The notes under the pieces: generated by a model
The model's database searches: none
What the model was told of the DNA's origin: nothing
The model's input: the letters and a program-made list of their open reading frames with translations, nothing else
Made by a program: the position numbers and the translations under genes
Part shown: piece by piece, positions 5,214 to 35,542 of the stretch
Numbering within the stretch: position 1 is the first letter of the stretch
Layout of the letters: every line of letters starts with the position of its first letter
NCBI RefSeq assembly: GCF_006345805.1
Contig: NW_021824694.1
Coordinates: 1-36,381, forward strand
Origin: Octopus sinensis
Taxonomy: Eukaryota
Length of the DNA: 36,381 bases
Reading direction: 5' to 3'

Positions 5214-8200
5214 ATGTTGGCTCTCAATCCTGCCACAGTCTGTGATACAACGCCAATTCATAAGGAAACTACACCAATTCTTCCCCAAATATTACATACA
5301 CAAAACACAAAGAAAACAGAAGAACAGGAAAGAAAAGACACAAAGAAATCTGAAGAACAGGAAAAGTCCATGTTACCAAGTTTCCTTCATATTGTGACAT
5401 GTTACCGAACACTAATCAAAACAGACCACATCAAAACGTTTATAGATTATGTAAAAAATAAATGTAATCACATGAACTCTCTGGGTTTAAATGGATCTCG
5501 AATTTTACGTAATGTCAAACGTAAAATGCCAAGATTTCTGGAATTTGCAAAACAAAATTATGATTTTGTTCACCAAAACCTTGATTGGTTTCAACAAAGA
5601 CTCTTTGACATTTATGTCACCTGTAACCCATACAACCACAAGACCATTGAACCACCAAAAGTAACCACAAAATTTCGGCCTCTTCAGCCAGTTGTGACTA
5701 GAGAAGCAAAGATTGAAGAATCTGGTGAAGACTTAAGCAACCCCATATCCAATATTGTTGTCATACAAGGGGGAATTGTAACATATTCCCACCCCTGCAT
5801 GACAATATGTTGTGTAACAAGAGACGGCAACAGAAACGATGTTCGTTGCTCATCTTCTGTTACTGATTTTACCAGAATCAGTGAAGATACAGTCCTGGCC
5901 ACCCTCCCCTTCAAAAAAATGATTCTTATTATCAACCCTTTAATTTTAAAATCAAAAGAATTCAGCTAGGATTAATCTTGGTTTCTTATTTGGAACATTC
6001 TACGCTTATAGGTGTAGAACTGTTTGGTAAAACCATATCCTCATTGATTGGGAAGATAATAGAATTATCACTCATTTATTGGCAAAGAGATACCTGCAGA
6101 TATTGCTGTTGGTCCACAAGGTAACCTGTTAATAGCATTTGCTAATATTAACAGAGTTACCTGTTATGATGTGGATGGCCAGCAGATATTTGAGGTAGAG
6201 ACCCATTCTCTGGATCTCCCAACCAGCATCACTGTGTACCAAAACCATTTTTATGTCCTCCAGGGACATATTATTTATCGGATTTCAGGTAAGGGTGGTG
6301 TGTCAAAGAGGGAAATTGGAATGAAATGTCGGTATTTTTGCGTTTGCTCAGATACTATTTTCTTGACTGATTATTTTGGGGTTCTGCATAATATAGGGAC
6401 AACTAAAGATTTTTGGTTCAAGTCGTCTTACAGCAACCAGCTATGTACACCCAGTCTGATCAACCATATATATATTGAGGATTTCTATAATGTCAAAAAT
6501 ATTCTTCCTATGTCAACATCTTTCATATTAATACTCTACGGGAATAAGAAAGCTATATTACTCTCTGATATTGAGGGAAAAAATAGCCAAAATTATATAA
6601 CTTTTAATTCTTCACCTTCTGCACTTTGTAGAATAAATGCAAACAGATTCCTGGTCTTTTATTGTGAAATGAAAGGGTTTCAGTATATCACCTGTCCTGA
6701 ACTAAGAAAAGGCCCTTTAATAAAGGTGAAAACTGGTTACATGAAAATATGTCATATTGTATCAAATAAGTGTTTAGCTGTGACCACCACTGAAAACAAA
6801 AGCGAGGTCCATATCCTCTTGATCAATGAAGATAAAGTTGACATTGCAGAAAGAATATCTCTGAGACATCATAATGTCAGCATTGCTGCAACTCCAATTA
6901 ATTTTGTAGTCGTAGATGGAAACGAAAATAAAATGGTATTTTATTCCACATGTGGTGAAGAACTTTTTCAAAAATACCTTCCATTCTATGGCTACCCTCA
7001 TCACATCTACTCTGATAATGTTTATTTCTATGTCCTCTTCAGGAGACACTCTATTCTCAGATGTTACGATCTATATGGAGAAATGAAATGGCAGTGGGAA
7101 CTGCCTTTCCCTGTTCACCCTCACATTGCTGTTTTCCAAGGAACTCTTTATGTCCCGGACACTCAACTCAACAGGGTTCTTCTTTACAAGAATCATGACC
7201 AGTCGTCTGGCTGTTGTTTACACACGAAAAATCCTTACATCAGAAATCTAAATCTACGACTCAAAGAAAAGGAGAAAGACCAAAACTTGTCATTGGCGAA
7301 ATATGTAATCTGTCCAATGGACAGTTGGTGGTGTCTGACATCAACCATGATTGCTTGTTATACATATCTAATGAAGGAGAAATTGTGTCCAGATTATCTC
7401 TGCCGTCTACAGCCACAGATATATGTCGATGGGATTCTAATCATATAGGGGTCACATTACCCCTACAGAAACAATTAAGGGTCATCGGAAACCTATCAAA
7501 GGCACTGAGAAGTGTATCATTAAGGCAGCCTTATGTACGGGTGTGTAAGATGGGTGAAGGTGAAATTGTTTGTTATTGTGATAAACCATCACATTTAGAC
7601 ATTTTGGCCATCAATTATTATAATCAAGTTGCAGTAATTAAGACAATTAATATCCCTGTTTTTGTGAAATCATTATCAATAGACAAGAAAACAGAAAAGC
7701 TATTAATTGTTACTAGGGGAAAAGCTTTTCAGTACAACACTAGAATAGGTGGTGGTGGTCATGGTGGTCGTCAGATGGTCCCCAGTGTTTTAATGTCCCA
7801 AGTGAAACATCCCCTCAGTCTGCAAGGTGGATCTATTGACCAAACGTCTGTTTATCTGATAGACAGAAGCCGTATGTTTGCTATAACTGATCATAATTTG
7901 GTGGTTAATGATCTCGTTACTAATAATCAACTTAATTATTACATCGACCTGGTGGATGTATTTCCCAGAAACATTTCTCTCAGTGAAATGTTGTCTTCCA
8001 CTTTATATCTACAGGACCTGACAGTTTCTGATAAAGCCAGACATATTCCTCTCCCTAAACATTTGGGAGACAAAGAACCAGTGGTAATTAATCATATGTT
8101 AATTACTGAAAATAACTTGATTGCAGGATGGGACATGGAGAATGGAAACATTAAGATATTCACATTTGATGGTCACCTTCTGGATTCAATCAAAGTGAAT

Positions 8201-12234: not shown

Positions 12235-12340
12235 TCGGGGTCACCATTAGTTTTAAACATTGTATGGATTCAATGGGGTCCGTCTGAGTAAAATAGTAGT
12301 TAAAGGGGTCCATAGATAAAGAAATGGTTGAGAACCCCTG
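12235..12340. mobile_element. End of a hAT-like non-autonomous DNA transposon
   Basis: Ends in GGTTGAGAACCCCTG, the reverse complement of a CAGGGGTTCTCAACC hAT-type TIR; partner TIR not found. Confidence 0.4.
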
Positions 12341-12879
12341 ATTTGAAAGGTATTTCTATAAAATTTCATTGAAAATACCCATTTTCATGAAAGCTGTGAA
12401 GGGGGAAAAATGTCATGGAAGTGTTGTTAAAAGTATCCATTTTCCTGGAAGTTATGAGGAAACAAAGTCGATGGGGTATACATCTGTAGTTATACCCCAA
12501 AGTCAGTGGGACATAATTCTGTTCTTATGCCGAAATATTTATAAAAGTGAATGTATATAAAATTGTGTAGAAATGTGTTTGTATATATATATATATATAT
12601 ATGTTTGTATATGAATTATACATTCTATATGATTAAGTTTAAAAAAGAAATGTCACAAGATATTAGAATATTTAATGCATTGGATAATTTCCGACTCTAT
12701 TGTATAGGATTGACGATACATTATATAGACATAAATATATAACACAAAATTATATACACAGGAAAGTAGAATATTATATATGCATGCATATTTATATATA
12801 AACTCAGATATATATATACACCTGCAGACATATACATATAATTATACATTATTATACACAGCCTTCTTGCACACACATA

Positions 12880-13208
12880 AACATTCAGTCCCACTGCGTG
12901 GCACCTTGGGTAAGTGTTTTCTACTATAGCCTGGGGCCGACCAAAGCCTTCCGAGTGGATTTGGTAGATGGAAACTGAAAGAAGCGCGTTGTATATATAT
13001 GTGTGTGTGTATGTTTGCGTTTGGCCCCGAACATCGCTTGACAATGGATGTTAGTGTGTTTATGCTCCCATAACTTAGCGATTCGGCAAAAGTCACCGAT
13101 ACAATAAGTATTAGGATTAAATCCGAGGTCAGTGTGTTCGTCTAGAGGTTGTGCTCCAGCATGGCCGCAGTCAACTGACTGAAACAGGTAAAAGAAAAAA
13201 AAAAAGAA
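12880..13208 (+). mobile_element. Same SINE family, 5'-truncated copy
   Basis: TTCAGTCCCACTGCGTGGCACCTTGGG... through GCTCCAGCATGGCCGCAGTC...GAAACAGGTAAAAG and an A-rich tail. Confidence 0.8.
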
Positions 13209-13796
13209 TACCTTATGATCCACATAGAGAAATGGCAACGGGAGGAATGAAATCCACCTGCTTAAGGACATCTGAGGATATTTCTGGTCTGGCATCACAC
13301 AAACTGCCCAGTCTGGAGTCTCAGCATTTTCCCGTTCTAGTGTGTCTGTCCGTTGCCTAGCAACAACAATTTGAATCAAGTAAAATAAAAGGCGGGAAAT
13401 CCGAGCCTAAAAAATCTGTCTAAATAATTTATTTGCAATAAAACAGACATTGTCAGCATTTTTAAAAATTAAATAATTTTAAGTGATATGAGATATGTCA
13501 CAATTAAGTCATAATTAGGAATTATAATTAATTTGGACGTGAAAAAAAAAGGTAAAACTTGATATGGACGAAAGACGAGTGAAGTAAACTAATAACTGCT
13601 GATATATATATATATATACCCATCATTCTAACTATACAACATACATTTACATATATATTGTTTATATATCAGGGCATTACCATACATAAATGCTTCACAC
13701 TACGAGGGATTATTAAAGTCAAACTACAATAATAATAACATTATATGTATATATATATATATATATACCCACCATTCTAACAATACAACATACATT

Positions 13797-13843
<47 letters not shown>

Positions 13844-13931
13844 GTGTTTATATATCAGGGCTTTACCATACATAAATGCTTCACACTACAAGGGACTATT
13901 AAAGTCAAACTATCATAATAAACACATTATA

Positions 13932-13984
<53 letters not shown>

Positions 13985-14009
13985 GTGTTTGTGTGCTCCA
14001 CAAATGTAT

Positions 14010-14444
14010 AGGTACAGCTGTTCCTGTGTGGTAAGAAGTTTGCTTTCCAACCACAGGGTTCTGTGTTCAGTCCTACTGCATGGCACCTAGGGCAATTCTC
14101 TTCCATTTTGACCTCGGGCCTTGTAAGTGGACCTTGTCAGATGGAAACTGAAGTGAGCCCATCAGACATAAATATATATATATATAGATATATATATATA
14201 GATTCATGTGCGTGTAGGTGTGCCTGTCTGTCGGTCTGCCTAACTCCCACCCTCGCCATAACTTGACAACCGATGGTGGTGTGTTTACATCCCTGTAATT
14301 TCATTCAATAAAAAAGACTGCCAGAATATGTACTAAGCTTTCAAAGAGTAAGCCCTGGAGTCGATTTGTTCGGCTAAAGCCCTTGAAGGCATTGCTCCAG
14401 CATGACCACAGTCCCATTGCTGAAACAAGTAAAAGAATAAAAGA
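14010..14444 (+). mobile_element. Same SINE family, diverged copy
   Basis: Collinear similarity to 26324-26720 over head, body and tail. Confidence 0.8.
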
Positions 14445-14464
14445 GTGTTTATATATCTATACAG

Positions 14465-14467
14465 ATG

Positions 14468-14525
<58 letters not shown>
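14465..14525. repeat. (GATA)n microsatellite
   Basis: Read directly. Many other (TA)n, (CA)n and (GA)n tracts occur, e.g. 940-990, 11400-11515, 13790-13840, 17130-17205, 25825-25890, 26720-26810. Confidence 0.95.
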
Positions 14526-14591
14526 GAATATGATGATACTGTGGTGATCCTGCATGGCCGTGACCTTTACACTAGAGGTCAATACTACATA

Positions 14592-14629
<38 letters not shown>

Positions 14630-14661
14630 GTGTGTGTGTGTGTGTGTGTGTGTGTATGGAT

Positions 14662-16035
14662 ATTCTTTTAGTCTTTTATTTGTTTTAGTCACTTGACAGT
14701 GGCCATGTTGGAGCACCACCTTCAGTCAGGCATATCATCCCCAGGACTTATTCATTGTAAGCCTTGTACTCATTCTGTCAGTTACTGTTGCCGAACCACA
14801 AAGTTACAGGGATGTAAACACACCAACATCGGTTGTCAAGCAATGGTGTGGACAACCACAGACAAACAAATATATACATACAGTGGTGGGGAAATAAATA
14901 TTCGTAAACGTCATAATTCTTTATTTATTTAATTTCTAATGAACATAAATGGGATATACCAATACTATATTTGCATTCACTTGCATAAACTAAGAATATG
15001 CAAAAGAAACTAATAAATTATAGTAACTAAGGAGTTTATATACAATTATAAATATTTAGGGGTGAAAAAAGTATTCGTACAAAATAAATTTATAATTTTC
15101 TATGCCACAAAATACGGTTAAAATAATTTTATTTTTACTAGAACTTTCTCGTTTGTTCCAATAATCTTATCAGTTGTCATTTCTAAGTGTGAAAACACTA
15201 GCTTCTTCATTCAACATTGAGACAATATAAAGTAGTATCGTAATAATGGCAAAAAGTAAAGAACTCACAAATTCAGTGAAAAACTTAATTATTGAACGGT
15301 GGAAAAGAGGTAAAAGTTACAGGAAAATATCAGAGACCCTTTGTATTCCACTTTCTACCATATTTTCATTTATTCAAATATAAAAAAATCGGGAACTGTT
15401 GAAAACAGAATAAGATCCGGTGCACCATGCAAGATTTCCCATAGATCTTTAAGAAAAATGAAGTGAAGAATTGGAAAAAACTCAATGATCACCAGAAAGG
15501 AGTTGCAAGAAGACTTGTTAGCTTCAGAGACTAGTGTTACACTAAGAACAATCAGCAATGAACTTCATAGGAATGAACTGAAATCATGCTCTCCTAGAAA
15601 AAATCCACTGTTGACTAAAAGGCATAGAGATGCCCGTTTAAAATTTGTTTATGAACATAAAGATAAATCTGATACATTCTGGGAAAATGTTCTATGGACA
15701 GATGAGTCGAAAATTGAATTGTTTGGACGAAATTCGCGTAGCCATGTTCGGAGGAAAGATAGTACCACCTATTCGCCGAAAAACACAATTCCTACCGTAA
15801 AGTTTGGAGGTGGCAACATCATGGTGTGGGGGTGTTTCTCTGCAAATATTTATTTCCACACCCCACTGTATATACAAGTTTCTTTCAGTTTCCGTCTACC
15901 ATATCCACTCACAGGGATCTGGTTGGACTAAGGCTACAAAATAAGACACTTGCCCAAAGCGCCTCTCAGTGGGACTGAACCTGGGACCATGTAGTTGGGA
16001 CGCAGGCTTCTTATCACACAGCTACACTAGTGTCT
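14662..16035 (-). mobile_element. Same SINE family, split by the Tc1 insertion
   Basis: The 3' half (14662-14880) and 5' half (15871-16035) join seamlessly at the TA when the Tc1 is removed. Confidence 0.8.
14881..15868 (+). mobile_element. Internally deleted Tc1/mariner DNA transposon with transposase pseudogene
   Basis: TA target duplication at 14879-14880 and 15869-15870. Imperfect TIRs CAGTGG..GGAAATAAATATT. Frameshifted transposase from ATG 15246 (MAKSKELT...; WENVLWTDESKIELFG; PTVKFGGGNIMVWGCFS), truncated directly into the right TIR. Confidence 0.92.
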
Positions 16036-16204
16036 ATATGTATATATAAGCAAACATCAGTCTATATAGATATACATACATATATCTATCTATCTGTGTC
16101 TATCTACATATATATATATCAATCTGTCTATCTATCTATGTATCTATATATATATATATATATTATATATATATGTCTACATATATAAATATATATATTT
16201 TTAT

Positions 16205-17130: not shown

Positions 17131-17171
<41 letters not shown>

Positions 17172-18669: not shown

Positions 18670-21600
18670 ATGGAGAAGATTAATGAAGAAAACAAAATGT
18701 TGGCTCTCAATCCTGCCACAGTCTGTGATACAACAGCAATTTATAAGGAAACTACACCAATTCTTCCCCAAATATTACATACACAAAACACAAAGAAAAC
18801 AGAAGAACAGGAAAGAAAAGACACAAAGAAATCTAAAGAACAGGAAAAGTCCATGTTACCAAGTTTCCTTCATATTGTGACATGTTACCGAACACTAATC
18901 AAAACAGACCACATCAATACATTTATAGATTATGTAAAGGATAAATGTAATCACATGCACTCTCTGGGTTTAAATGGATCTTGAATTTTACGTAATATCA
19001 AACGTAAAATGCCAAGATTTCTGGAAATTGCAAGACAAAATAATGATTTTGTTCACCAAAACTTTGATTGGTTTCAACAAAGACTCTTTGACATTTATGT
19101 CACCTGTAACCCATACAACCACAAGACCATTGAACCACCAAAAGTAACCACAAAATTTCGGCCTCTTCAGCCAGTTGTGACCAGAGAAGCAAACATTGAG
19201 GAATCTGGAGAAGAATTTGAAGAAATCCCAATAATATCAAATATTGTCATCATAGAGGAGGGAGTGATGACATATTCCCACCATTGCAAGATAATAAGTT
19301 TAGTAACAAGAGACAGTGACAGAATTGATGTCCATTGTCCATCTTCTGTGACCAGTTTCACCAGAATCAGTGAAGACATGGTTCTGGCAACCCTCCCCTT
19401 CCAAGAAATGATTCTTATTATCAGCACCAAAACCTTTAAGATCAAAAGGATAAAGTTGGGGTTATATATGGTGAGTTACTTGGAAGATTCTACACTTATA
19501 GGTGTAGAAATGTTTGGTGAAACAGTTTACCAATTTGATTGGGAGGATAATACCATAAACTATCAATTTATTACCAAAGAAACACCTACAGATATTGCTG
19601 TAGGGGTCCAGAATATACTTGTAATTACATTCGCCAGCATCAACAGAGTAATCTGTTACAAACTGGATGGTCAACAGTTATGGGAGGTAGAGACCCATTC
19701 TCTGCACCTCCCAAGTAAAATCTCTCTGTACCAAAATTATTTCTATGTCCTCCAGGGACAAATAATTTATAGGATTTCAGCTAAAGGTGGTGTAACAAGG
19801 AGGGACATTGGCAGGAAATGCCGCTCTATTTCTGTTGGTAAAGATACCATTTTGGTAACAGATTATTGCGGCAAACCACATGGTATTCAAATGAATAAAG
19901 ACTTTTGGCCCAAACTGTCATACAACCACCAGCTACATACCCCCAGTTTAAAAGACTATATTGATATTGAGGATTGCTACAACATTACTAATATTCTACC
20001 TATGTCTACATCTTCTATATTAATAATTTACAAAAACAAGAAAGCTAAATTATTCACTGATAACGGGGAAATAATTAACCAAAATAATTCAGTTTTCTTT
20101 GAGCTTCCTTCTTTCTGTTGTAGAATAAACGCAAACAGATTCCTGGTATTTTATTGTGAAATGAAAGGATTTCAGTATATCACCTGTCCTGAACTAAGAA
20201 AAGGCCCTTTAATGAAAGTCCATACTGATTACATGAAAATATGTCATATTGTATCAAATAAGTGTCTGGCTGTGACCACCACTGAAAACAAAAGCGAGAT
20301 CCATATCCTATTGATCAACAAAGATAAAGTTGACATTGCAGAAAGAATTTCTCTGGGACATTATAATGTCAGCATTGCTGCAACTCCAATTAATTTTGTA
20401 GTCGTAGATGGAAACGAAAATAAAATGGTATTTTATTCCACATGTGGTGAAGAACTTTTTCAAAAATACCTTCCATTCTATGGCTACCCTCATCACATCT
20501 ACTCTGATAATGTTTATTTCTATGTCCTCTTCAAGAGACACTCTATTCTCAGATGTTACGATCAATATGGAGAAATGAAATGGCAGTGGGAACTGCCTTT
20601 CCCTGTTCACCCTCACATTGCTGTTTTCCAAGGAACTCTTTATGTCCCGGACGCTCAACTCAACAGGGTTCTTCTTTACAAGTATCAAGGCCGGTTGTCT
20701 GGCTGTCGTTTACACACAAAAAATCCTTACATCAGAAATCTAAATCTACGACTCAAAGAAAAGGAGAAAGACCAAAAACTTGTCATTGGCGAAATATGTA
20801 ATCTGTCCAATGGACAGTTGGTGGTGTCTGACATCAAGCATGATTACTTGTTGTACATTTCTGAAGAAGGAGACATTGTGTCCAGATTATCTCTGCCGTC
20901 TACAGCCACAGATATATATCGATGGGATTCAAATCATATAGGGGTCACATTACCCCTACAGAAACAATTAAGGGTCATCGGAAACCTATCAAAGACAGTG
21001 AGAAGTGTATCATTAAGGCAGCCTTATGTACAGGTGTGTAAGATGGGTGAAGGTGAAATTGTTTGTTATTGTGATAAACCATCACATTTAGATATTTTAG
21101 CCATCAATTATTATAATCAAGTTGAAGTAATTAAGACAATTAATATCCCTGTGTTTGTGAAATCATTATCAATAGACACAAAAACAGAAAAGCTATTAAT
21201 TGTTACTAAGGAAAAAGCTTTCCAGTACAACACTAGAATAGGTGGTGGTGGTCATGTCGGTCGTCAGATGGTCCCCAGTGTTTTAATGTCCCAAGTGAAA
21301 CGTCCCCTCAGTCTCCAAGGTGGATCTATTGACCAAACATCTGTTTATCTGATAGACAGAAGCCGTATGTTTGCCATAAACGATCAGAATTTGTTGGTCA
21401 ATGATCTCGTTACTAATAATCAACTTAATTATTACATCGACCTGGTGGATGTATTTCCCAGAAACATTTCTCTCAGTGAAATGTTGTCTTCCACTTTATA
21501 TCTACAGGACCTGACAGTTTCTGATAAAGCCAGACATATTCGTCTCCCTAAACATTTGGGAGACAAAGAACCAGTGGTAATTAATCATTTGTTAATTACT

Positions 21601-24086
21601 GAAAATAACTTGATTGCAGGATTTGACTGGGAGAATGGAAACATCAAGATATTCACATTTGATGGTCACCTTTTGGATTCAATCAAAGTGAATTTTTATA
21701 CATGTAATAAAATGTGTCGATGGCAGTCAAACACACTGGTCATTATAATTTGGATTGTTTTTATGCTGAATCCGAACTGTTGACATTAAAAGTGGAATTT
21801 CCATTGTCGTTGGTAATTTACCAAACAAGAAGAAAATATCATTGTGTGGCTTCTTTATCAAATAATCAACTGGTTTGTAGTAATTTGGGAGATGCATGTC
21901 ATTTGTATTTTGTTGATATTGATGAAATACATTCGAGTGCGAAGGAAATAAAACAAATAGACATACCTGAACCATTAATAGAGAGAACAGAAGATGGAAA
22001 TTATTTTGATGTCATCCATGATATTAAGGTTACTGCTGAAGATGTCATCATTGTCTTAAATGAAAGATTCATAATTTTCTTCAACAGTGATGGTCAATAT
22101 TTACATCCAATCAGACACTACATCGATTTTGATTATTTTGTTGCAAGCAAGATGACAACTGATGACAGTTTTTTGTACATTTATGGTGAGTGGAAGAAAT
22201 ATTTGGGTCTGTTTAGATATAAAAACATTTTGTGTTGGACCCAAAAAGGGGAATACAAGAGAATATTTTTAAATCAAAGAATTTATAAAGATAAAGTAGA
22301 ATTCTGCAATATAGAATGTAAAGGACCAAGGTTTGTTGGAAGCCCCACAGCGGGATGGAGAAAGAATGAATTGTATGTTGAAGGGTTGTTTATGGTGAAT
22401 CGAGACAGCTTCCCGGTTGCTCGTTTACAAACAGACGAATGTCCTGTTCAAGTGAAAGATTTTGATGTCTCTGAGGAAGGAAAGACAGTTGTGTGTGAAA
22501 AAGCCAATAATGGAAATTTTAAAATATTTGATAGAGATGGGGAGTTGCTATGTCATAGAGATGCTGGAAGTTTAGTTGGTGGTGTGTGTTTTACACAAGA
22601 ATCACGCATAATGGCCACGGTTCCTAAAAGGAAAGAAATATTTCAACTGAATGGAGAAGATTTGCAGGCATCTCAAGTTTGGTCGAGTCTCATCCCTTAT
22701 GGTATAATATGGAGAAAAGTGGCGGGTATTTACTGGTGTGTACATAATGAATTGATTGAATGTCATTGCATAAAGATTGATGGGGACCAAGTGAACATTC
22801 TGGAATCTGTGTTGTTATCAAATCTTGATTCTGGTCTTCGTTTCCCTTCCATTACATCTGAAACGAACAAGGAAATATTCAGTAATGAATTAATTAATAA
22901 ATTGGAATACAGAGAAGGAGATGGAGATGGGGGAAGAAAAAGAAGAGGTAAATCAGGTGAAATAATTGGTAAAGATAGATTAAAGGTGAGATGTGGTAAT
23001 TACATAGCAGAGATTAATAATTCAGGAATTGATAAAATATCAGTGAGGAGACTTCCATATAGGACAGCAATGGTCCCTTTTTCCATTCCTGCATTCGAGG
23101 AACCTGTTCATTATGATTATAGTGACATTAGGGACCGGAACAGTAAACTAATTAAGTTAGATGAGAATGTGAGTGTGTTGGTGTTTCGAGAAAGTGTCAC
23201 ATTAATCACAACAACAACAACAACAACAGTGGACATACTTCAACATGAACAACAACAACGACCACCACTGGACATATGTCGGTGGACAGAGGAATGTTTC
23301 ATTGTTGCCTTTGGGAGAGAAATGAGGGTCTTCAACAGGGATCTCTGTCATTTAAAAACCATCAGAACTGAGAAATACTACAACAGAATTTATAAATACA
23401 ACGACAATCAACTCGTGTGTGGTGGTCATTATATTAGAGACATAACTCAAGAAGAGAGACACAAGAAATACAAAAGAGAATGGAAGAACAACAAGTATTA
23501 CTATTATTGCAAAGACCCCAACCTCTTTGACCCTTATTATGTGGATGTGGTTGATATCAAAGATGGGAAATGTAAAGATGAAGTGTGTCATGGAAAAATG
23601 GGGAGATTGGGAAGGTTGGAAGGAGCAGGGGTGGTGGATGGTGTGGGAGTCACATCTTTTGATGATGTTGTTGTTGTTGTGAGGTGGGAGATAAAGGAAG
23701 AGGACAAGCCTGAATTGTGGAAAGATTTGTGTTTTGTGGAATGGTTCAGGGAAAAGACTTTGGTGAGGAGGATAGAAACAAAAGGCTGTACATCTTCTGC
23801 TCTGGAATATTATATTCCAAGACGTCATTTAACCATAATTGGTGAATGTGTTTATATAACAGATAGAAGAAACAGTATTTATGAAATACCTCGACATATT
23901 GAAGAGGAAATAACTGAAAATAAGGAAATCGTGATTTACGAATATAATCCAAAATATTTACTCCTCAGATGGGATGATAATGAAGTGTTTGAAGTTCTTG
24001 GTTTGGATGTTTCAGACAATTCTTTGATGGTTTTTGGAATTATTCCTGGACGTCAATCTTTTGCTTTCTTTTATTTTGACAAATAA
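18670..24086 (+). pseudogene. Paralog B: same multi-propeller family, ~1,805 codons, with in-frame TGA at 18982-18984 and a 1-nt frameshift at ~21748
   Basis: ORFs 18670-18984, 19009-21783 and 21714-24086 align with A. TGA replaces CGA (A 5499-5501), and ATAATTTGG replaces ATAAATTTGG of A. 5417+1=5418 nt is divisible by 3. A shorter product from ATG 19009 is still possible. Confidence 0.7.
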
Positions 24087-24278: not shown

Positions 24279-24519
24279 ATGTGTTTATATAACAGATTTA
24301 GAGAACAATATTTATGAAATACCTCAACATATTGAAGAGGAAATATCTGAATATGATGAAATCCGGGGATTAAAAGATAATCCGAAATATTTACTCCTCA
24401 GAGGGGATGATAATGAAGTGTTTGAAGTTCTTGGTTTGGATGTTTCAGACAATTCTTTGATGGCTTTTGGAATTATTCCTGGACGTCAATCTTTTGCTTT
24501 CTTTTATTTTGACAAATAA
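24279..24519 (+). pseudogene. Orphan duplicate of the family's C-terminal ~80 codons, downstream of B
   Basis: Reads VYITDLENNIYEIPQHIEEE...VLGLDVSDNSLMAFGIIPGRQSFAFFYFDK* in frame, followed by the same 3' flank as the full genes; no genuine start. Confidence 0.85.
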
Positions 24520-25290: not shown

Positions 25291-25515
25291 ATTATAAAAA
25301 TGTAAATATAAATATGAAACAAAATACACATACATTTGGATATATATATATACATAAGTGTATATATATATATATATACATAAGTGTATATATATATATA
25401 TTATATATTATATATATATATAAAATATTATTAGAGACAAAACCACTATTTTGCAAAACAAACAAGGAAAGACTTAATCAATACATAAAATTTTAATAAA
25501 TAGTCAAAAAAACCG

Positions 25516-25558
25516 CCACTACAATCGTTTCTTGTCTTGATCGACAATCTTCAGGTGG
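25516..25558 (-). ncRNA. Mirror copy of the hammerhead motif
   Basis: Reverse complement of 25604-25645 with one extra base in loop II. Confidence 0.65.
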
Positions 25559-25603
25559 ACTTCCAATAATTCAGTGTCAATTTGACACTGAATTATTGGA
25601 AGT

Positions 25604-25645
25604 CCACCTGAAGATTGTCGATCAGACAAGAAACGATTGTAGTGG
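25604..25645 (+). ncRNA. Minimal type I hammerhead ribozyme motif
   Basis: CCAC-CTGAAGA-TTGTC(GATCA)GACAA-GAAA-C(GATT)G-TA-GTGG: intact core, stems I and II pair, GUA cleavage triplet. Confidence 0.7.
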
Positions 25646-25817
25646 CGGTTTTTTTGACTATTTATTAAAATTTTATGTATTGATTAAGTCTTTCCTTGTT
25701 TGTTTTGCAAAATAGTGGTTTGTCTCTAATAATATTTTATAATATTTTACTATAAATTGGATTTAATCCTAAATCTGATTTTTTCCCTGTAAATTTGGAT
25801 TTATTCCCTAATATTTA

Positions 25818-25888
<71 letters not shown>

Positions 25889-26323
25889 ATAAGTATATAT
25901 ATAAAAATATACACACACATAAGGTTACAGATAATTAATTATATATGCTGGAATATACATATACATCCACATCTATGGGTACATATACAATGTTCATTAC
26001 ATTACCAATATTATTATTATTATTATTATTAATATTAATATTAGATTATGAGCATTCTGCTATTCACAATACATAGTAAATGAAAAATACAACTTAGAAT
26101 ATAGTATACTATAATATAATATAATATAATATATAGACAGATGCTTATGAAAGATGCAAGCACATTCATTCAACAATAATGTCAGTATATTCATATATTA
26201 TACAGTCAAAATCGAAACTTCAGTCTTATTCTGCATACATATATATATATATATATATATATACACAGGTAACAAACCATGCATATACATATACATACAT
26301 ACGCATAAACACACACACACACA

Positions 26324-26515
26324 CTCTTTTACTTGTTTCAGCCATTTGACTGCGGCCATGCTGGAGCACCGCCTTTAGCCGATCAAATCGACATATTCTT
26401 TTTAAGCCCAATACTTATTCTATCGGCCTCTTTTGCCGAACCGCTAAGTGACGGGGACATAAACACACCAGCATCGGTTGTCAAGCAATGCTAGGGGGAC
26501 AAACACAGACACACA

Positions 26516-26548
<33 letters not shown>

Positions 26549-26720
26549 CATATATACGACAGGCTTCTTTCAGTTTCCGTCTACCAAATCCACTCACAAG
26601 GCTTTGGTCGGCCTGGGGCTATAGCAGAAGACACTTGCCCAAGATGTCACGCAGTGGGACTGAACCCGGAACCATGTGGTTGGTTAGCAAGCTACTTACC
26701 ACACAGCCACTCCTGCACCT
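26324..26720 (-). mobile_element. tRNA-derived SINE (abundant octopus-type family with central microsatellite)
   Basis: Head AGGTGCAGGAGTGGCTGTGTGGTAAG...GGGTTCAGTCCC, body CTTGGGCAAGTGTC...GGAAACTGAAAGAAGCC, tail CTCCAGCATGGCCGCAGTC...GAAACAAGTAAAAGAG. Confidence 0.85.
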
Positions 26721-26726
26721 ATATAT

Positions 26727-26811
<85 letters not shown>

Positions 26812-26824
26812 CTGCAAAAACAAA

Positions 26825-27180
26825 GGTATTTACCTCTATCATAAGAGACCCTTTGTATGCAGATGATTGTGAGCTAGTAGCACACACAGAGATTGATATG
26901 CAACACATTTTGAATGCATTCTCTGATGCTTGCACTGCCGTAGGATTGACAGTCAATCTCAAGAAAACTGTTGTCATGCATCAACCTGCCCCTGGTAAGC
27001 AGTATAGTGTACCAAACATCTATGTGTATGGTAAACGACTTGATGTAGTTGATCAGTTTGTCTACCTGGGAAGCACTATTAATAGCTATAGCAATTTGGA
27101 TGATGAAATTCCATATAGAATTAGGAAAGCAAGTGTTGCTTTTGGAAGGTTAGAAAAGCGCCTCTGGACTCGGCGAGACA
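26825..27180 (+). mobile_element. RTE-clade non-LTR retrotransposon reverse-transcriptase fragment
   Basis: YADD catalytic motif followed by GLTVNLKKTVVMHQPAPG...FVYLGS...RIRKASVAFGRL, typical of RTE/BovB-like RT C-termini; both ends lost in microsatellites. Confidence 0.88.
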
Positions 27181-27200
27181 TATGCACATAAATACATATA

Positions 27201-27247
<47 letters not shown>

Positions 27248-27926
27248 GTATGTATTGTAGTATGAATATAGACATTTATATATGTATTTATTATATGATA
27301 TATGTGGTTGTGTGTGCATGTATATATGTGTATATGTTGATGTGCGTGTATATATATGTGTATATAAAAAGTAGTCATTTTTAAATATTTATGCAATTAG
27401 ATATAGATTAATACCGATATTAGATTATTGGTGGGTTTCCTACCTTAAAAATTAAAATTAATATTTAACATTATAGTCGATTTTGATATAATCATAATTG
27501 GTTATATATATAATATATATATATAATATAATATATATAATATATATATATATATACACACACACACATATATATATATATACATAATAATAACCAATAA
27601 AATAATAGTACATTCCATTTAAAGTAAAAACTATGCGATTTCTTAATATATATTTAGTGGTCTAAATGGGAATTATACATTAAAATTACATCTTTGGCAA
27701 AAGTTGGGAAAGATTTAGAAAAAACTTTCAATAGATATAAAAAGTTTGAATTACATATTTGACAAAATTTGGGGGGGGGGGAATTGGAAGAAACTTTCGA
27801 AAGATACAAAAATCAAATTCACCGTATAAATATGTGAATCCTTAAATTCACTTTTACATTAGTTTTACACTTTTCCAATTAAATTCGTTTATTAGCTATA
27901 CTCGCATATGCTAAGTTATATTAATT

Positions 27927-28298
27927 GGAAGCACCCCATCGGTTATGACGACGAGGGTTCCGGTTGATCCGATCAACGGAACAGCCTGCTCGTGAAATTA
28001 AGGTGTAAGTGGCTGAGCACTCCACAGACACGTGTACCCTTAACGTAGTTCTCGGGGATATTCAGCGTGACACAGAGAGTGACAAGGCCGGCCCTTTGAA
28101 ATACAGGTACAACAGAAACAGGAGAGAAAGTTGTGGTGAAAGAGTACAGCAGGGATCACCACCATCCCCTGCCGGGGCCTCGTGGAGCTTTTTAGGTATT
28201 TTCGCTCAATAAACACTCACAACGCCCGGTCTGGGAATCGAAACCACGATCCTACGACCGCGAGTCCGCTGCCCCAACCACTGGGCCATTGCGCCTCC
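27927..28298 (-). mobile_element. Full-length tRNA-derived SINE
   Basis: Minus-strand head GGAGGCGCAATGGCCCAGTGGTTGG...GGTTTCGATTCCC (A and B boxes); flanked by the 10-bp direct repeat TATATTAATT at 27917-27926 and 28299-28308. Confidence 0.88.
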
Positions 28299-28479
28299 TA
28301 TATTAATTACTATTACAAATACAAAAGACCATATTTATCATAGATATATTTACGATGTCTATCAATGTTTATTAGTGTGAATACTGTAGAAATCAATATA
28401 CAATTTTATTGTCACTTAATTATCCAACTATTCATATTTTAATTCGGCATTAGTATCTATCAATTCATTTATATATCTA

Positions 28480-28863
28480 CTAGCAGTATCGCCCGGCGTT
28501 GCTCAGGTTTGTAAGGGAAATAACTATAAAGCATATTTAGAGAGTTATAGCCAAAAAATAGCAAAAAAATGGAAAAAAAATTATGGTAAATTTTTTTTGA
28601 CAGTTAAAAAAGGTGGAGTTGCGTCCCCTAGACGGTCTGTGGTTTGGGTTTCTGAAATTCGACCCCATGTCGAATTTATCGATCTTTTTCAGAACTGGGG
28701 GAACTTTTCAAAATTTTCGCTGCGTTAGTTTTGAATTATGACATTGGGCTATGTGTGTGTCAAGTTTCATCAGAATCGGTTGAAAGCCGTGGTCAGGGTG
28801 AGGGTACGAGAAAACAGACACACAGAAAACGCACAGACAAACTGCCGTTTATATAGAGAGAGA
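28480..28863 (-). mobile_element. Short non-autonomous Helitron
   Basis: Same CTAGCAGTATCGCCCGGCGTTGCTC terminus as at 2456; the other end is ...TATATAGAGAGAGA|T (TC start on minus); A/T insertion, no TSD. Confidence 0.75.
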
Positions 28864-29284
28864 TTTACTGATATATACAATAGTTATTTATTATTTATCT
28901 TAGGTTATCCATTATCATATCTATTTACCCTTATATATAATAGGTATTTATTATTAATCTTAGGATATACAAGTATATTTCCGTACTTTAATAAATGTTA
29001 GATCAAAACCATTAATACCAAGATGGACCAAATAAGTAGTTAACTAAACAAACAAATATTTAGTCCAACCGTTTCTTATAAAACTTTATAAATACAACAC
29101 ATACCGTAATTGAACATAGGTTTAAGTACACAAATATATATATATGTGCATATACATATATACACTTGTATATGTACATAAATATACACATGCACACATA
29201 TACAGTCATATAAATAGCCACACATATGCATAATTATACACATACATATACATATAAATACTCATAGATATACACAGACATGTA

Positions 29285-29600
29285 CATTCATACATACACA
29301 TACATACATATACCTATATACCCACACATAAATATACATACACACACGTACACATATATATACATACACACATACATATATACATACATATACCTATATA
29401 TCCACACATAAATATACATACACACACGTACACATATATATACATACACACATACATATACATACATATACCTATATACCCACACATAAATATACATACA
29501 CACACGTACACATATATATACATACACACATATATAAATGCATACACACACATATATACATACACACGTATATATAAATATACATACACACACTCACACA
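29285..29600. repeat. Minisatellite of ~70-bp AC/AT-rich units
   Basis: TACATATACCTATATAYCCACACATAAATATACATACACACACGTACAC recurs three times. Confidence 0.85.
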
Positions 29601-29724
29601 TATATACGCATTCATATACATACATACACACTACTTAAATAGACATATATACATATCTGCAAGTACACATATATACATACATTCATCAGCACACATAGTG
29701 AGAAAGAAAATTGAAGAAAGTTAC

Positions 29725-29785
29725 AATAACTGTGAGTGTGTAGAATGCAATGTCAGTGATTTAGGTTCAATTTCCAGGTGAGCCC
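29725..29785 (+). repeat. More degenerate tRNA-like element 3' of the C orphan cassette
   Basis: GTGTGTAGAATGCAATGTCAGTGATTTAGGTTCAATTTCCAGGTGAGCC. Confidence 0.45.
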
Positions 29786-29829
29786 TGTAGCAATAACAAC
29801 AACATCAAATTTTAATATTTCTGAAAATA

Positions 29830-30070
29830 TTATTTGTCAAAATAAAAGAAAGCAAAAGATTGACGTCCAGGAATAATTCCAAAAACCATCAAAGAATTGT
29901 CTGAAACATCCAAACCAAGAACTTCAAACACTTCATTATCATCCCCTCTGAGGAGTAAATATTTTGGATTATCTTTTAATCCCTGGATTTCATCATATTC
30001 AGATGTTTCCTCTTCAATATGTCGAGGTATTTCGTAAATATTGTTCTCTAAATCTGTTATATAAACACAT
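29830..30070 (-). pseudogene. Orphan duplicate of the C-terminal ~80 codons, downstream of C
   Basis: Reads VYITDLENNIYEIPRHIEEETSEYDEIQGLKDNPKYLLLRGDDNEV...FAFFYFDK*; nearly identical to 24279-24519. Confidence 0.85.
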
Positions 30071-30133
30071 ATACATATACTGTATATAAATATACACACA
30101 CACACAAAGAGAGTGTGTTGAGGAATGTTACAA

Positions 30134-30196
30134 CACTAAGTGTTAGTGTGTAGAATGCAATGTATGCGATGCAGGTTCGATTCCCAGGCAAAGCCA
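30134..30196 (+). repeat. tRNA-like element 3' of C
   Basis: CACTAAGTGTTAGTGTGTAGAATGCAATGTATGCGATGCAGGTTCGATTCCCAGGCAAAGCCA, followed by (CAA)n(GAA)n. Confidence 0.55.
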
Positions 30197-30255
30197 TTTA
30201 CAACAACAACAATAAGAAGAAGAAGAAGATTGAAGTTTAATATTTCTGAAAATAT

Positions 30256-33200
30256 TTATTTGTCAAAATAAAAAAAAGCAAAAGATTGACGTCCAGGAAT
30301 AATTCCAAAAACCATCAAAGAATTGTCTGAAACATCCAAACCAAGAACTTTGTAAACTTCATTATCGATACCTCCCAGGAGCAAATATTGTTGAATATCT
30401 TCAGATGTTTGATGTTCAATATGTCCAGGTATTTGGTAAATATTGTTATATCTGTCTACTATATACACATATTCACCTTGTGTAGTTAGATAATGTCTAT
30501 GGATGTTGTTGTATAGATATCTTGGTAGTTTTATACTTCTGACCAAATGTTCACTAAACCAAATGACATCATAGGCATAACCACTCCAGTATCTCTCCCG
30601 CTCTTCCTTCACAACGACAATATCTCCACCAGATGTCACTACTATATCCAACACCACCTCTATCTCCTCCTTCTTTCTCAGCCAAGAGCACACTTTATGA
30701 ATGTATTTACATACCTTTCCATCAATAGCAATTACATCTACATAATAGGAAGACCAGCTTCTACATTCAGTCATGTCTTCAATATAAGGACCACCACCAC
30801 CACACACGAGTTTATTGTCGTTGTATTTATAAATCCTGTTGTAGAATTTCTTAGTTTTGATGGTTTTTAAACGACGGAGATCCCTGTTGAAGAACATCAG
30901 TTCTTCACCAAAGGCGACAATGAAACATTCCTCTTTCCACCAACATATGTCCAGTGGTAGTTGTGGTAGTTGTTTATGTTGAAGTATGTCCACTGTTGTT
31001 GTTGTTGTTGTTCTGATTAATGTGACACTTTCTCGAAACATCAACACACTCACATTCTCATCTAACTTAATTAGTTTACTATTGTAATCTCTACTGTCTT
31101 CGATATCATAATTAACAGGTTCAGTGCATGTAGGAATGGAAAAAGGGACCATTGCTGTCCGATATGGAAGTCTCCTCACTGATATTTCATCAATTCCTGG
31201 CTTACTCTCCGCTATGTAATTACCACATCTCACCTTTAATCTACTTTTACCAATTATTTCACCTGATTTACCTCTTTCCACTTCATCTCCGCCACTGTAT
31301 TCCAATTTATTAATTAATTCATTACTGAATATTTCCTTATTCGTTTCAGATGTAATGGAAGGGAAACGAAGACCAGAATCAAGATTTGATAATGACACAG
31401 ATTCCAGAATGTTCACTTGGTCCCCATCAATCTTTATGCAATGACATTCAATCAATTCAATATGTGCACACCAGTAAATATTTCCCACTTTTCTCCATAT
31501 CACACCATAAGGTACTTGACTTTCCCAAACTTTATATTTCCCCAAATTTTCTTGCTTCAGTTGAAATATTTCTCGTCTGTTAGGGACCGTGACCATTATG
31601 CCTCTTCCATGTGTAAAACACACACCACCAACTAAACTTCCTAGATCTCTGTGGCATAGCAATTCCCCATCTCTATCAAACATTTTAACATTTCCATTAT
31701 TGGCTTTTTCACACACAACTGTCTTTCCTTCATCAGAGATGTCAATATCTTTCACCTGAACAAGACATTCGTCTGTTTGTAAATGACAAACAGGGAATTT
31801 TTCCCGATTAAGCTGAAACAAACCTTCAACATACAATTTATCTTTGTTGTGGCTCCCAGCAAAACGTGGACCATTACAGTTTATACTTGTGAAATCTATT
31901 TTATCTTTATAAATTCTACTATTTATAAATATTCTGTTGTATTCTCCTGTCTGTGTCAAACAGACTAAGCTGTTATAGCCAGTGAAATCACCATAACGAT
32001 CCCACCATCCATAAATGTACAAATAACTGTCATCAATTGTCATGTTGTTGTATTTAATATCATCATAAGCCATGTAGTGTCTAACTGAATGCAAATACTG
32101 ACCACCACTGTTGAAGAATATTATGAATCTTCTATTGCTGACAATGATGACACCATTAGCAGTAACTATAATATTACAGATGTAATTAATAAGTCCACGT
32201 CTGTCTTTCGTTAATGTCTCAGGTATGCCTATTTGTTTTATTATATTCACGGTTGAATGTTTTTCGTCTATAACGATAACATACAAATTACATTTATCTC
32301 TATATTTACTACACAACAGTTGATTGTTTGATAAAGAAGCAATACATTTATATTCATTTCTTGTCAGGTAGGTTACCGACGACAATGGGAACCCAACTTT
32401 TAAAGTCAACAATTGGGACTTAGCACCATAAGTTGTAATGACCAGTGTGTTTCTCTGCCAACGACACATATTAATAGGAAAAACATTCAATTTGATAGAG
32501 TCCACAAGTTGACCGTCAAATGTGAATATCTTAATGTTTTTATTATTCCAGTCATATGACGCTATCAGGTTATTTTCAATAACACACAAACGGCGAATGT
32601 ACACTGGTTTTTGGTCTCCAAAACCTGAAGGGACAACGACATGTCTAGCTTTGTCAGAAACTGTCAGGTCCTGTAGATATAAAGTGGAAGACAACATTTC
32701 ACTGACAGAAATGTTTCTGGAAAATACATCCACCAGGTCGATATAATAATTAAGTTGATTATTTGTAACGAGATCATTAACTAACAAATTATGATTGTTT
32801 ATGGCAAACATACGGCTTCTGTCTATCAGATAAACAAATATTTTATCAATAGATCCACCGCAGAGATTGAGGGGACGTTTCACTTGGGACATTAAAACAC
32901 TGGGGACCATCTTACTACTACTATAACCACCACCACAGATACTAGTGTTGTAATGAAAGGCTATTTTCCTAGTAACAATTAATAATTTTCGTGTTTCATT
33001 TTCTATTGCTAATGATTTCACAAACACAGGGATATTAATTGTCTTAAGTACTTCGACTTGATTATAATAATTGATGGCTAAAATATCTAAATGTGATGGA
33101 TTATCACAGTAACAAACAATTTCACATTCACCCATCTTACACACCCGTACATAAGGCTGCCTTAATGATACACTTCTCACTGTCTTTGATAGGTTTCCGA

Positions 33201-35542
33201 TGACCCTTAATTGTTTCTGTAGGGGTAATGTGACCCCTATATGATCAGAATCCCATCGACATATATCTGTGGCTGTAGACGGCAGAGATAATCTGGACAC
33301 AATGTCTCCTTCCTTAGAAATGTATAACAAGTAATCATGGTTGATATCGGACACCACTAGCTGTCCATTGGACAGATTACATATTTCGCCAATGACAAGT
33401 TTTTGGTCATTCTCCTTTTCATAGATTTAGATTTTTGAAAGAAGGATTTTTAATGGGTAAACAACAGCCAGACGACCGGTCTTGATACTTGTAAAGAAGA
33501 ACCCTGTTGAGTTGAGTGTCCGGGACATAAAGAGTTCCTTGGAAAACAGCAATGTGAGGGTGAACAGGGAAAGGCAGTTCCCACTGCCATTTCATTTCTC
33601 CATATAGATCGTAACATCTGAGAATAGAGTGTCTCCTGAAGAGGACATAGAAATAAACATTATCAGAGTAGATGTGATGAGGGTGGCCATAGAATGGAAG
33701 GTATTTTTGAAAAAGTTCTTCACCACATGTGGAATAAAATACCATTTTATTTTCGTTTCCATCTACGACTACAAAATTAATTGGAGTTGCAGCAATGCTG
33801 ACATTATGATGTCCCAGAGAAATTCTTTTTGCAATGTCAACTTTATCTTCATTGATCAATAGGATATGGACCTCGCTTTTGTTTTCAGTGGTGGTCACAG
33901 CCAGACACTTATTTGATACAATATGACATATTTTCATGTAACCAGTTTGCACCTTTATTAAAGGGCCTTTTCTTAGTTCAGGACAGGTGATATACTGAAA
34001 CCCTTTCATTTCACGATAAAAGACCAGGAATCTGTTTCTGTTTATTCTACAAAGTGCAGAAGGTGAAGAATTAAAAGTTATATAATTTTGGCTATTTTTT
34101 CCCTCAATATCAGAGAGTAATATAGCTTTCTTATTCCCGTAGAGCATTAATATGGAAGATGTTGACATAGGAAGAATATTTTTGACATTATAGAAATCCT
34201 CAATATATATATGGTTGATCAGACTGGGTGTACATAGCTGGTTGCTGTAAGACGGCTTGAACCAAAAATCTTTAGTTGTCCCTATATTATGCAGAACCCC
34301 AAAATAATCAGTCAAGAAAATAGTATCTGAGCAAACGCAAAAATACCGACATTTCATTCCAATTTCCCTCTTTGACACACCACCCTTACCTGAAATCCGA
34401 TAAATAATATGTCCCTGGAGGACATAAAAATGGTTTTGGTACACAGTGATGCTGGTTGGGAGATCCAGAGAATGGGTCTCTACCTCAAATATCTGCTGGC
34501 CATCCACATCGTAACAGGTAACTCTGTTAATATTAGCAAATGCTATTAACAGGTTACCTTGTGGACCAACAGCAATATCTGCAGGTATCTCTTTGCCAAT
34601 AAATTGAGTGATAATTCTATTATCTTCCCAATCAATGAGGAATATGGTCTTACCAAACAGTTCTACACCTATAAGCGTAGAATGTTCCAAATAAGAAACC
34701 AAGATTAATCCTAGCTGAATTCTTTTGATTTTAAAACTTAAAGGGTTGATAATAAGAATCATTTTTTTGAAGGGGAGGGTGGCCAGGACTGTGTCTTCAC
34801 TGATTCTAGTAAAATCAGTGACAGAAGATGAGCAATGAACTTCATTTCTGTTGCCGTCTCTTGTTATACAACATATTGTCATACAGTGGCGGGAATATGT
34901 TACAATACCCCCTTGTATGACAACAATATTGGATATGGGGTTGCTTAAGTCTTCACCAGATTCCTCAATCTTTGCTTCTCTGGTTACAACCGAAGAATGT
35001 GGCCGAAATTTCTTGATTATTTTTGGTGCCTCAATGATTTTGTGTTTGTCTTGCAAAACATTTGTCTTAATGTATTGTTCCAAAAAACATTCAAGTTTTC
35101 CTATAATACTAAAATCTTGGCTGTAATCATATTCCTTAATGTCTTTCTGCAAAATTTCTATTCTCTGTGTAAAATCTTTTAGAAAATTATTTTCATCCAA
35201 ACCAACACTTTTTAAAAAAGTACATATTTTTTCCCGAGAATTTATCAACAAATTAATTTTGTCTTCATAGGCATTGAACCTTGTATAATATACACGTTTG
35301 TCCAAAATATTTCGTCTTCCAATTATTTCCCAGTTTTTAGGGTCTCCTTTATGTCTTTTTTGTTTTGTTGTTGACTGAAATGAAGATCTTTTCTCGGACA
35401 TTTCTCTCCTTGAACCGTCATCTCTCTCATATTTACACCTTTTATTGTCAACTCCTTCTTCATCCCATTTTGGTGTCGAGTTCCTTAAAGCCCTTTTCAG
35501 AGGGATAAGTTTCCTTAAAGTATTTTCAGTCTGGTCTTCCAT
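30256..35542 (-). CDS. Paralog C: same family, ~1,764 aa if repaired; split into a 707-aa ORF and a ~1,030-1,055-aa ORF by an 8-nt deletion/stop at ~33419
   Basis: ORFs 35542-33419 and 33357-30256. Minus strand reads CTA TGA AAA GGA G where B reads CTA CGA CTC AAA GAA AAG GAG (net 8 nt lost); 5287+8=5295 nt is divisible by 3. Distinct basic/helical N-terminus; ends in the same ...PGRQSFAFFYFDK. Confidence 0.7.

Follow-up and report, generated by a model that had tools for sequence, protein, structure and literature searches.

The proteins with propellers of the type considered here include the canonical TRIM-NHL proteins (TRIM71/LIN-41, Brat, TRIM2/3/32, and NHL-2), which are conserved and encoded by single-copy genes. 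In Brat, LIN-41, and TRIM2/3/32, the top face of the NHL propeller serves as binding surface for RNA or protein. In cephalopods, TRIM-like proteins of 440–660 amino acids (aa) combine a RING and a B-box domain with one C-terminal propeller of ~250 aa, and their genes do not form arrays but are scattered across many chromosomes. Here we describe a complete unplaced contig of Octopus sinensis (NW_021824694.1, 36,381 nucleotides (nt), referred to as the window), which contains three paralogous coding exons of ~5.4 kb, named A, B, and C. Each is predicted to encode a protein of ~1,800 aa and ~207 kDa with six NHL-like propellers and without RING or B-box, and we know of no counterpart of this architecture among NHL proteins. 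We regard it as quite probable that A, B, and C are tandem members of an octopod-specific, undescribed, and amplified family, the products of which we infer to be multivalent binders.

Lineage-specific expansions are common, and the interest of the family lies in its architecture and in the scale of its array. The expanded orthogroups of bivalves include B-box and RING (PMC8382680), and cephalopod genomes contain multi-megabase tandem arrays of lineage-specific genes (PMC9068888). Further unnamed clade-specific arrays are mentioned by Albertin et al. (2022), for squid only. The octopus family is apparently among the large Octopus arrays, and it can now be given a predicted fold, a probable origin (the TRIM-like propeller), and an architecture. 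No description of the family was found in the literature by locus names or by topic, and every source labels the proteins as “uncharacterized”.

A stop-to-stop scan for open reading frames (ORFs) revealed one set of frames for each gene, i.e. four frame pieces for A (5109..10590, +), two for B (18985..24086, +), and two for C (35599..30256, −). The intact homologue P0002 (1,790 aa) was collinear with each of the three in tblastn searches. Together, the scan and the alignment bear out the claim of an earlier note on this DNA that it contains three giant paralogous ORF sets. At the DNA level, A and B are 91% identical, A and C 88%, and B and C 83%. The similarity between the paralogues ends ~100–350 nt outside of the ORFs, and the remainder of the window is AT-rich, is rich in microsatellites, and contains one Tc1/mariner fragment. 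The C-terminal piece of C corresponds to O. sinensis LOC118768539 (P0001; 100% identity over 84% of the length). The product annotated for C in RefSeq has 882 aa and covers the C-terminal part only, because C contains an 8-nt deletion (see below). The features of the three genes are summarized in Table 1.

Table 1. Features of the three genes in the window; the percentages and E values are from hhalign comparisons with the TRIM-like propeller
Feature	Position	Strand	Characteristics
Gene A	5189..10590	+	Type II N-terminus (MEKINEE..MLALNP..), six predicted propeller modules; ORF pieces, tblastn of P0002
Gene B	18670..24086	+	Type II N-terminus; ORF pieces, tblastn
3′-end relic downstream of B	24280..24519	+	Last ~80 codons and stop of a paralogue
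3′-end relic downstream of C	29830..30069	−	Same kind as that of B
Gene C	30256..35542	−	Type I N-terminus (MEDQTEN..); ORF pieces, tblastn
Module M6 of C	30259..31101	−	pLDDT ~80–90 over most of the module; 94.4%, E 8.6e-8
Module M5 of C	31102..31782	−	Shortest module, G/D/R-rich insert, poorly modelled; 95.8%, E 7.1e-9
Module M4 of C	31783..32616	−	pLDDT ~70–87; 97.9%, E 6.2e-13
Module M3 of C	32617..33420	−	..DICRWD..VTLP.. motif, second half poorly modelled; 98.1%, E 7e-14
Module M2 of C	33422..34207	−	pLDDT ~80–90, 23 predicted strands; 41%, E 2.8e-4, in register
Module M1 of C	34208..34972	−	pLDDT ~80–88, 23 predicted strands in fours; 88.1%, E 3.1e-6
N-terminal region of C	34973..35542	−	~110 residues predicted disordered, basic; ~80 predicted helical
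3′ splice acceptor of C	35543..35565	−	Polypyrimidine tract and “acag”, ends 7 nt before the ATG at 35542

The repeated architecture was not apparent from simple comparisons: when a full-length member was searched against itself by BLASTP, no internal repeat was detected. We set six segments of ~230–290 aa (M1–M6) at residues 200, 455, 722, 992, 1274, 1502, and 1790 of P0002 and compared their profiles with hhalign. Modules aligned with one another in register and end to end, with values of 95% for M4–M6, 94% for M3–M6, 80% for M4–M5, and 63% for M3–M4. The pairs M1–M5, M2–M5, M3–M5, and M5–M6 were near zero. At the level of sequence profiles the recurrence of the modules is not due to chance, and it is visible at this level only. 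The earlier note had quoted a blade motif that recurs six times in A, and the six instances were found exactly at nucleotides 5859, 6615, 7412, 8213, 9083, and 9773. The motif is the signature of the second blade, G-I-C-x-W......VVTLP...Q, which is common to the TRIM-like proteins and all six modules.

A homologue search returned 62 proteins, all of them from Octopus. We also searched 1.84 billion representative proteins with a profile (hidden Markov model, HMM) of M3–M6, which gave 37 matches. The 28 matches with E ≤ 1e-10 were Octopus proteins, the protein P0064 of Argonauta hians, and unnamed fragments; in P0064, the N-terminal region and six modules are collinear with those of the Octopus proteins at 39% identity. 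The weak tail comprised bacterial WD40-STAND proteins and four small proteins. Among the latter, P0085 of Sepia (Acanthosepion) pharaonis (CAE1315789.1) has Pfam matches for RING, B-box, and NHL, P0091 for B-box and NHL, and P0090 for NHL, while P0087 has no Pfam match. The bacterial proteins were rejected as noise, i.e. short repeated stretches that hit a single motif of M5. This module carries a WD40-like motif (..DISDEGKTVVCEKANNGNVK.FD..), which draws bacterial WD40-STAND proteins into HMM searches.

The alignment of the C-terminal propellers of P0085, P0087, P0090, and P0091 was used as reference for the comparison of the modules. This TRIM-like propeller aligned end to end with each of the six modules (Table 1), whereas unrelated WD40/PQQ control propellers reached at most 6% for M1–M4 and M6. 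P0085 also directly matches two family loci on the O. sinensis scaffold C30. The HMM tail, the hhalign comparisons, and the genome matches thus bear out the previously proposed kinship with the molluscan RING/B-box/NHL-like propeller, and the profile comparisons argue for homology between the modules and the one NHL-like propeller at the C-terminus of cephalopod RING/B-box (TRIM-like) proteins. The two groups also have single-ORF genes in common, and in both the linker before the propeller contains an NPS-F-L/K motif of similar form. They differ in the number of propellers (one versus six), the presence of RING and B-box, the protein length, and the genomic distribution. An ORF on the O. sinensis contig C21 (L030) was considered as a “missing link” and rejected, as its C-terminal 1,600 aa have no similarity to the modules. 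It is an uninterrupted ORF of 1,838 codons (L030 878–6394, −, i.e. C21:16210377–16215893) with an N-terminal RING and B-box and ~1,600 further residues without Pfam match, and represents another giant uncharacterised single-ORF TRIM-like gene.

The likeness to the canonical TRIM-NHL proteins consists, by analogy, in a six-bladed NHL-type propeller that would serve as the ligand-binding module; in addition, the NHL domain of TRIM71 was the top, though non-significant, sequence match in the PDB, and the bridging relatives have Pfam NHL matches. In contrast to the canonical proteins, the octopus family lacks both the tripartite motif and a filamin domain, has sub-threshold NHL similarity and six propellers in series, and is lineage-restricted and massively amplified.

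The fold of the modules was predicted with AlphaFold2. The models are all-beta, and for both M1 and M2 23 strands are predicted, which correspond to six blades of four strands, at predicted local distance difference test (pLDDT) values of ~80–90; M4 and M6 have values of ~80. A Foldseek search against the PDB yielded 822 and 1,618 matches at E ≤ 1e-3 for the two models, and the 50 best matches listed per model were all propeller-containing proteins. The top matches, all of them proteins with several propellers, were megalin/LRP2, DDB1, IFT-A, the tandem WD domains of Utp21, and LRP6, with E values of 1e-17 to 1e-18. The TM-scores were low (0.13–0.36), as expected for flexible multi-domain chains, and with whole multi-domain models Foldseek does not separate NHL propellers from YWTD or WD40 propellers. 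The all-beta character, the four-stranded blades, and the structural matches point to a beta-propeller fold of the models, and hhalign and AlphaFold2 together gave whole-propeller homology to NHL-bearing propellers and six four-stranded blades. As modelled, M1, M2, M4, and M6 are firmly predicted to be six-bladed beta-propellers, and M3 and M5 are assigned by homology alone. The module profiles, AlphaFold2, and Foldseek are all in agreement with the number of about six tandem propellers given in the earlier note.

Several known proteins also contain more than one propeller per chain (LRP1/2/4/5/6, DDB1, IFT-A subunits, Utp21/WDR36, WDR90, and EML5/6). However, they have no significant sequence relation to the octopus proteins, their blades belong to other families (YWTD, WD40) and occur in other numbers, and they contain accessory EGF, LDL-A, or helical repeats, so that the likeness is one of form and not of membership. 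The presence of megalin/LRP2 among the best Foldseek matches of the C-terminal model, and of LRP6 as well, could indicate that the three genes encode LRP/megalin-like receptors with serial six-bladed propellers, located outside of the cell or in its membrane. We consider this extremely unlikely. The N-termini are hydrophilic, and neither a signal peptide, in accordance with the earlier note, nor a transmembrane-like segment was found. Pfam gave no match to EGF, LDL-A, or LDL-receptor class B (YWTD) domains, the TM-scores reflect a generic multi-propeller shape only, and the sequence homology is to the cytosolic TRIM-like NHL propellers. More generally, nothing above the Pfam cutoff was found in the ORF pieces of the three genes or in the full-length homologue P0002, including WD40 repeats. 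The proteins thus have no known enzymatic or zinc-finger domain, and none of the family entries found in the databases has a curated Pfam domain.

The RING and B-box domains of the TRIM-like proteins are absent from the whole window: Pfam gave no match, no consensus pattern for a RING was found, and tblastn with TRIM-like N-termini gave no match at E ≤ 0.1. The earlier claim that the exon lacks them therefore holds, and it extends to the rest of the window. The stretch with the splice acceptor that precedes the ATG of C (Table 1) recurs in paralogues. In the model of the O. vulgaris orthologue, a mini-exon of seven codons, located 5.9 kb upstream, is spliced to the acceptor, and residues 8–1790 are encoded in one block. 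Because of the acceptor and this model, the coding sequence is essentially one exon behind a 5′ intron. The previous description as single-exon genes is thus correct with respect to one coding exon and has to be amended by the 5′ intron and the upstream mini-exon in O. vulgaris.

The acceptor implies that upstream exons exist, and, as the propellers are of TRIM-like descent, the proteins might be true TRIM E3 ligases with RING, B-box, and coiled-coil encoded in such exons. Four observations make this very unlikely. The full-length RefSeq and O. vulgaris models start at the methionine after the acceptor or add just 2–7 residues; the 36-kb window contains no RING/B-box coding sequence; the single-propeller TRIM-like genes of O. 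sinensis, which are spread over many chromosomes, hold RING, B-box, and propeller in one ORF each; and the N-terminus of the family is unlike that of the TRIM-like proteins. With hhalign, the profile of the N-terminal 200 residues matched neither the modules nor the TRIM-like proteins. In the AlphaFold2 model of the C ORF piece, residues 1–110 have pLDDT values below 30, and helices are predicted for residues 101–182 (pLDDT ~55). This helical stretch before M1 scored 0.2% against TRIM-like coiled coils in hhalign, and coiled-coil matches in a PDB profile search were non-significant.

Two types of N-termini occur, i.e. MEDQTEN.. in C and MEKINEE.KMLAL.. in A and B. Judged by the latter type, A is likely to begin with the ATG at 5189 and not at position 5214, as had been proposed before. 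The two variants of ~110 residues (5189–5520 and 18670–18990 versus 35542–35215) are unrelated to each other, and both are found in O. vulgaris models.

As assembled, all three genes are interrupted. A contains several frame breaks of 1–2 nt, at ~5196, 5944, 6039, 6075, 7282, and 10100. Gene A with its flanks (window ~3600–12150) and a part of B are also present on contig C13092, and over 8.5 kb the two copies of A differ by one substitution and 18 indels, which are scattered in both. This pattern indicates long-read consensus error, not divergence. When the gaps of each copy were filled from the other, one break region remained (~6039–6075), with two deletions of 1 nt, each in a short homopolymer, that are common to both copies. 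B contains a nonsense codon, TGA, at 18982–18984 (CGA in A), which was counted also for C13092 and C30. In addition, B has a frameshift of 1 nt at ~21753, which is not present in the C30 copy; the latter has a different break instead, and its 3′ end is missing. C has a single deletion of 8 nt at ~33418, in the K/E-rich linker between M2 and M3, which it has in common with a 99%-identical copy (C30:8496103–8498280) with the same open frame of 726 aa.

Positions 15019–36381 of the window are 97–99.6% identical to C30:8479547–8499062. The window is one of at least three near-identical, uncollapsed assembly copies, probably haplotigs, of a part of a large array. The assembly of 2.72 Gb comprises 13,516 contigs, and the window is one entire contig. 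The breaks are probably of mixed origin: in each gene, one or more of the lesions recur in a second contig copy and look real, and several others are probably artefacts. The three genes are probably damaged members of the family or, in the best case, mis-assembled ones. Apparent pseudogenes on unplaced contigs of this assembly, with its dense indel errors, need to be checked against the reads.

The family is large. At least 62 scored loci of O. sinensis match the N-terminal half of C (280 first-look candidates), 37 of which lie on the small, chromosome-scale scaffold C30 (15 Mb), between 3.4 and 15.1 Mb. In 28 of the 62 loci the frame is uninterrupted over 1,750–1,939 codons. The members in O. 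vulgaris are mostly located on one chromosome of 29 Mb. In a tree, the species are interleaved within the expanded clade, and Argonauta is separate.

The number of genomic copies (from dozens up to a few hundred candidates at first look, with 280 in one search and 184 in another), the single long ORF, the occurrence on both strands, and the nearby Tc1/mariner fragment could also suggest that the ~5.4-kb ORF is part of a mobile element and not a host gene. The evidence against this is manifold. Pfam identified no transposase, reverse transcriptase, integrase, or protease domain in the giant ORFs, and no terminal repeats were found where the similarity between the paralogues ends, a short distance from the ORF. 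In addition, the splice acceptor directly before the ATG is conserved, the modules are homologous to host TRIM-like propellers, the copies are concentrated on one scaffold, and cross-species orthologues can be identified. A mobile element is thus most improbable, and a host gene family is the preferred reading.

We calculated the ratios of nonsynonymous to synonymous substitution rates (dN/dS) by region among eight intact O. sinensis paralogues. The values increase along the protein, from 0.31 for M1, 0.41 for M2, 0.50 for M3, and 0.61 for M4 to 0.65 for both M5 and M6; the N-terminal region has a value of 0.61. A few windows of 40 codons have values of 1 or higher.

A second, deep lineage with six collinear modules comprises P0067 (O. 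vulgaris), P0095 (O. bimaculoides), and P0094 (O. sinensis LOC115223937). Its genes lie on contigs of 192–216 Mb, outside of the C30 array, and the proteins are 31% identical to P0002. P0067 and P0095 are 94% identical, compared with 66–85% for the closest cross-species pairs in the expanded clade. P0067 reaches 18.5 bits for the Pfam NHL domain, the cutoff being 20. This lineage is a candidate for a conserved founder gene, and such a founder would offer a tractable entry point.

The sequence of A is a mosaic. Its first two modules are nearly identical to those of C (5632–7250 versus 35049–33420; dS 0.04 for the N-terminal half), and its last four are closest to those of B (7250–10590 versus 21300–24086; dS 0.07 for the C-terminal half). 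This pattern suggests that neighbouring genes have recently undergone gene conversion or recombination. Relics of the 3′ end of another paralogue type are found ~200–440 nt past the real stop codon of B, of C (Table 1), and of one O. vulgaris member (L037 21461–21697 and 21902–22138), and they keep open frames. Their use as alternative last exons is disfavoured, as they occur in some paralogues only and resemble the 3′ end of paralogue type L022; they are probably leftovers of unequal crossing-over. Based on the mosaic and the relics, the expanded clade would have grown by tandem duplication, unequal crossing-over, and gene conversion, under birth-and-death turnover and relaxed or diversifying constraint. 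Expansions of invertebrate recognition families (bivalve B-box/RING/TRIM-like, C1q, TLR, and IAP) are similar in their tandem arrays, birth-and-death turnover, gene conversion, raised dN/dS, and many pseudogenes. Unlike these, the octopus family holds a strongly conserved member, and the likeness is one of genomic behaviour.

The breaks in the window, with at least one lesion per gene that recurs in a second contig copy, raise the question of whether the array is debris, i.e. a segmentally amplified dead gene, of which the window holds three pseudogenes. Many genomic copies with internal stops or short open frames, the high pairwise dN/dS values of 0.35–0.8, and the truncated 3′-end relics are in line with this. 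However, neutral decay at dS values of 0.1–0.5 would not allow open frames of the observed length at 28 scored loci. Furthermore, dN/dS is below 1 in every module, the architecture has been kept between Octopus and Argonauta at a low sequence identity, one lineage is highly conserved between species, and several breaks in the window are assembly artefacts. We therefore regard a dead array as improbable and prefer a living family with defective copies.

Several results nevertheless weigh against our reading of A, B, and C as members of an amplified family of six-propeller binders. All three copies in the window are frame-disrupted as assembled, and dN/dS values of 0.4–0.8 would also fit a mere relaxation of constraint. 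The NHL assignment is affected by the fact that no window protein has an NHL match at the Pfam gathering score, that the PDB sequence-profile search returned no significant match (E = 1 for TRIM71 NHL), and that the similarity of M5 is not specific for NHL, with ~74% for WD40 propellers that served as unrelated controls. The similarity of M1 and M2 to the remaining modules is weak (30% or less in hhalign for their pairs). With respect to the fold, AlphaFold2 was run on family alignments drawn from closely related species, the mean pLDDT values of 59 and 64 are modest, and M3 and M5, the shortest module, are poorly modelled. That squids, cuttlefish, and Nautilus lack the family holds for protein databases of unknown completeness, not for genomes. 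Finally, the proposed function is derived wholly from the architecture and from analogy.

With these reservations, the protein searches, the “uncharacterized” labels, and the literature agree with the earlier view of a lineage-restricted family that is not recognised as described. The probable origin is that the linker-plus-propeller unit of a TRIM-like ancestor was internally duplicated sixfold, with loss of the RING and the B-box, and that this duplication predates the split of Octopus and Argonauta. The products would be non-catalytic multivalent binders with six rigid propellers, each with one binding face, and the helical N-terminus might enable oligomerisation. NHL domains have been described as RNA-binding surfaces (PMC4015489, PMC5908797).

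By analogy, the proteins are fairly likely to act as a multivalent RNA- or protein-binding scaffold or adaptor in a general sense. Within this frame, the recognition of non-self or selfish nucleic acids or proteins by a diversified repertoire is a tentative possibility that we would not expect to be the case. Immune or genome-defence recognition by the expanded clade would be compatible with the dynamics of the array, and a recognition repertoire, if true, would add a new class to the families of invertebrate innate immunity or RNA regulation. The conserved, slowly evolving member argues for a conserved cellular or housekeeping role of at least one member and not for diversifying sensing alone. 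The earlier interpretation, a lineage-specific family of cytosolic multi-ligand sensors or scaffolds possibly in innate immunity, thus stands in part: it is supported with respect to structure, evolution, and lineage restriction, while the cytosolic sensor with an immune role is a hypothesis. The most far-reaching version would be an octopod-private intracellular repertoire of dozens of ~200-kDa proteins from a chromosome-scale array, with six independently diversifying NHL-like propeller faces of TRIM-like ligase descent, which have lost the ligase part and bind viral, transposon, or endogenous RNAs or proteins multivalently, alongside a conserved housekeeping founder; in this complete form it is speculative and rather doubtful.

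The remainder of the window contains three further features. Between A and B, a fragment of a degraded Tc1/mariner transposon (15467–15931, +) has an open frame of 154 aa, which matches HTH_Tnp_Tc3_2 (E 9e-16) and contains the start of the DDE region. A (TCT)48 microsatellite (10617–10762) begins 27 nt past the stop codon of A. A tandem array of AC/AT-rich units of 78/158 bp (29207–29655) is located immediately past the 3′-end relic of C.

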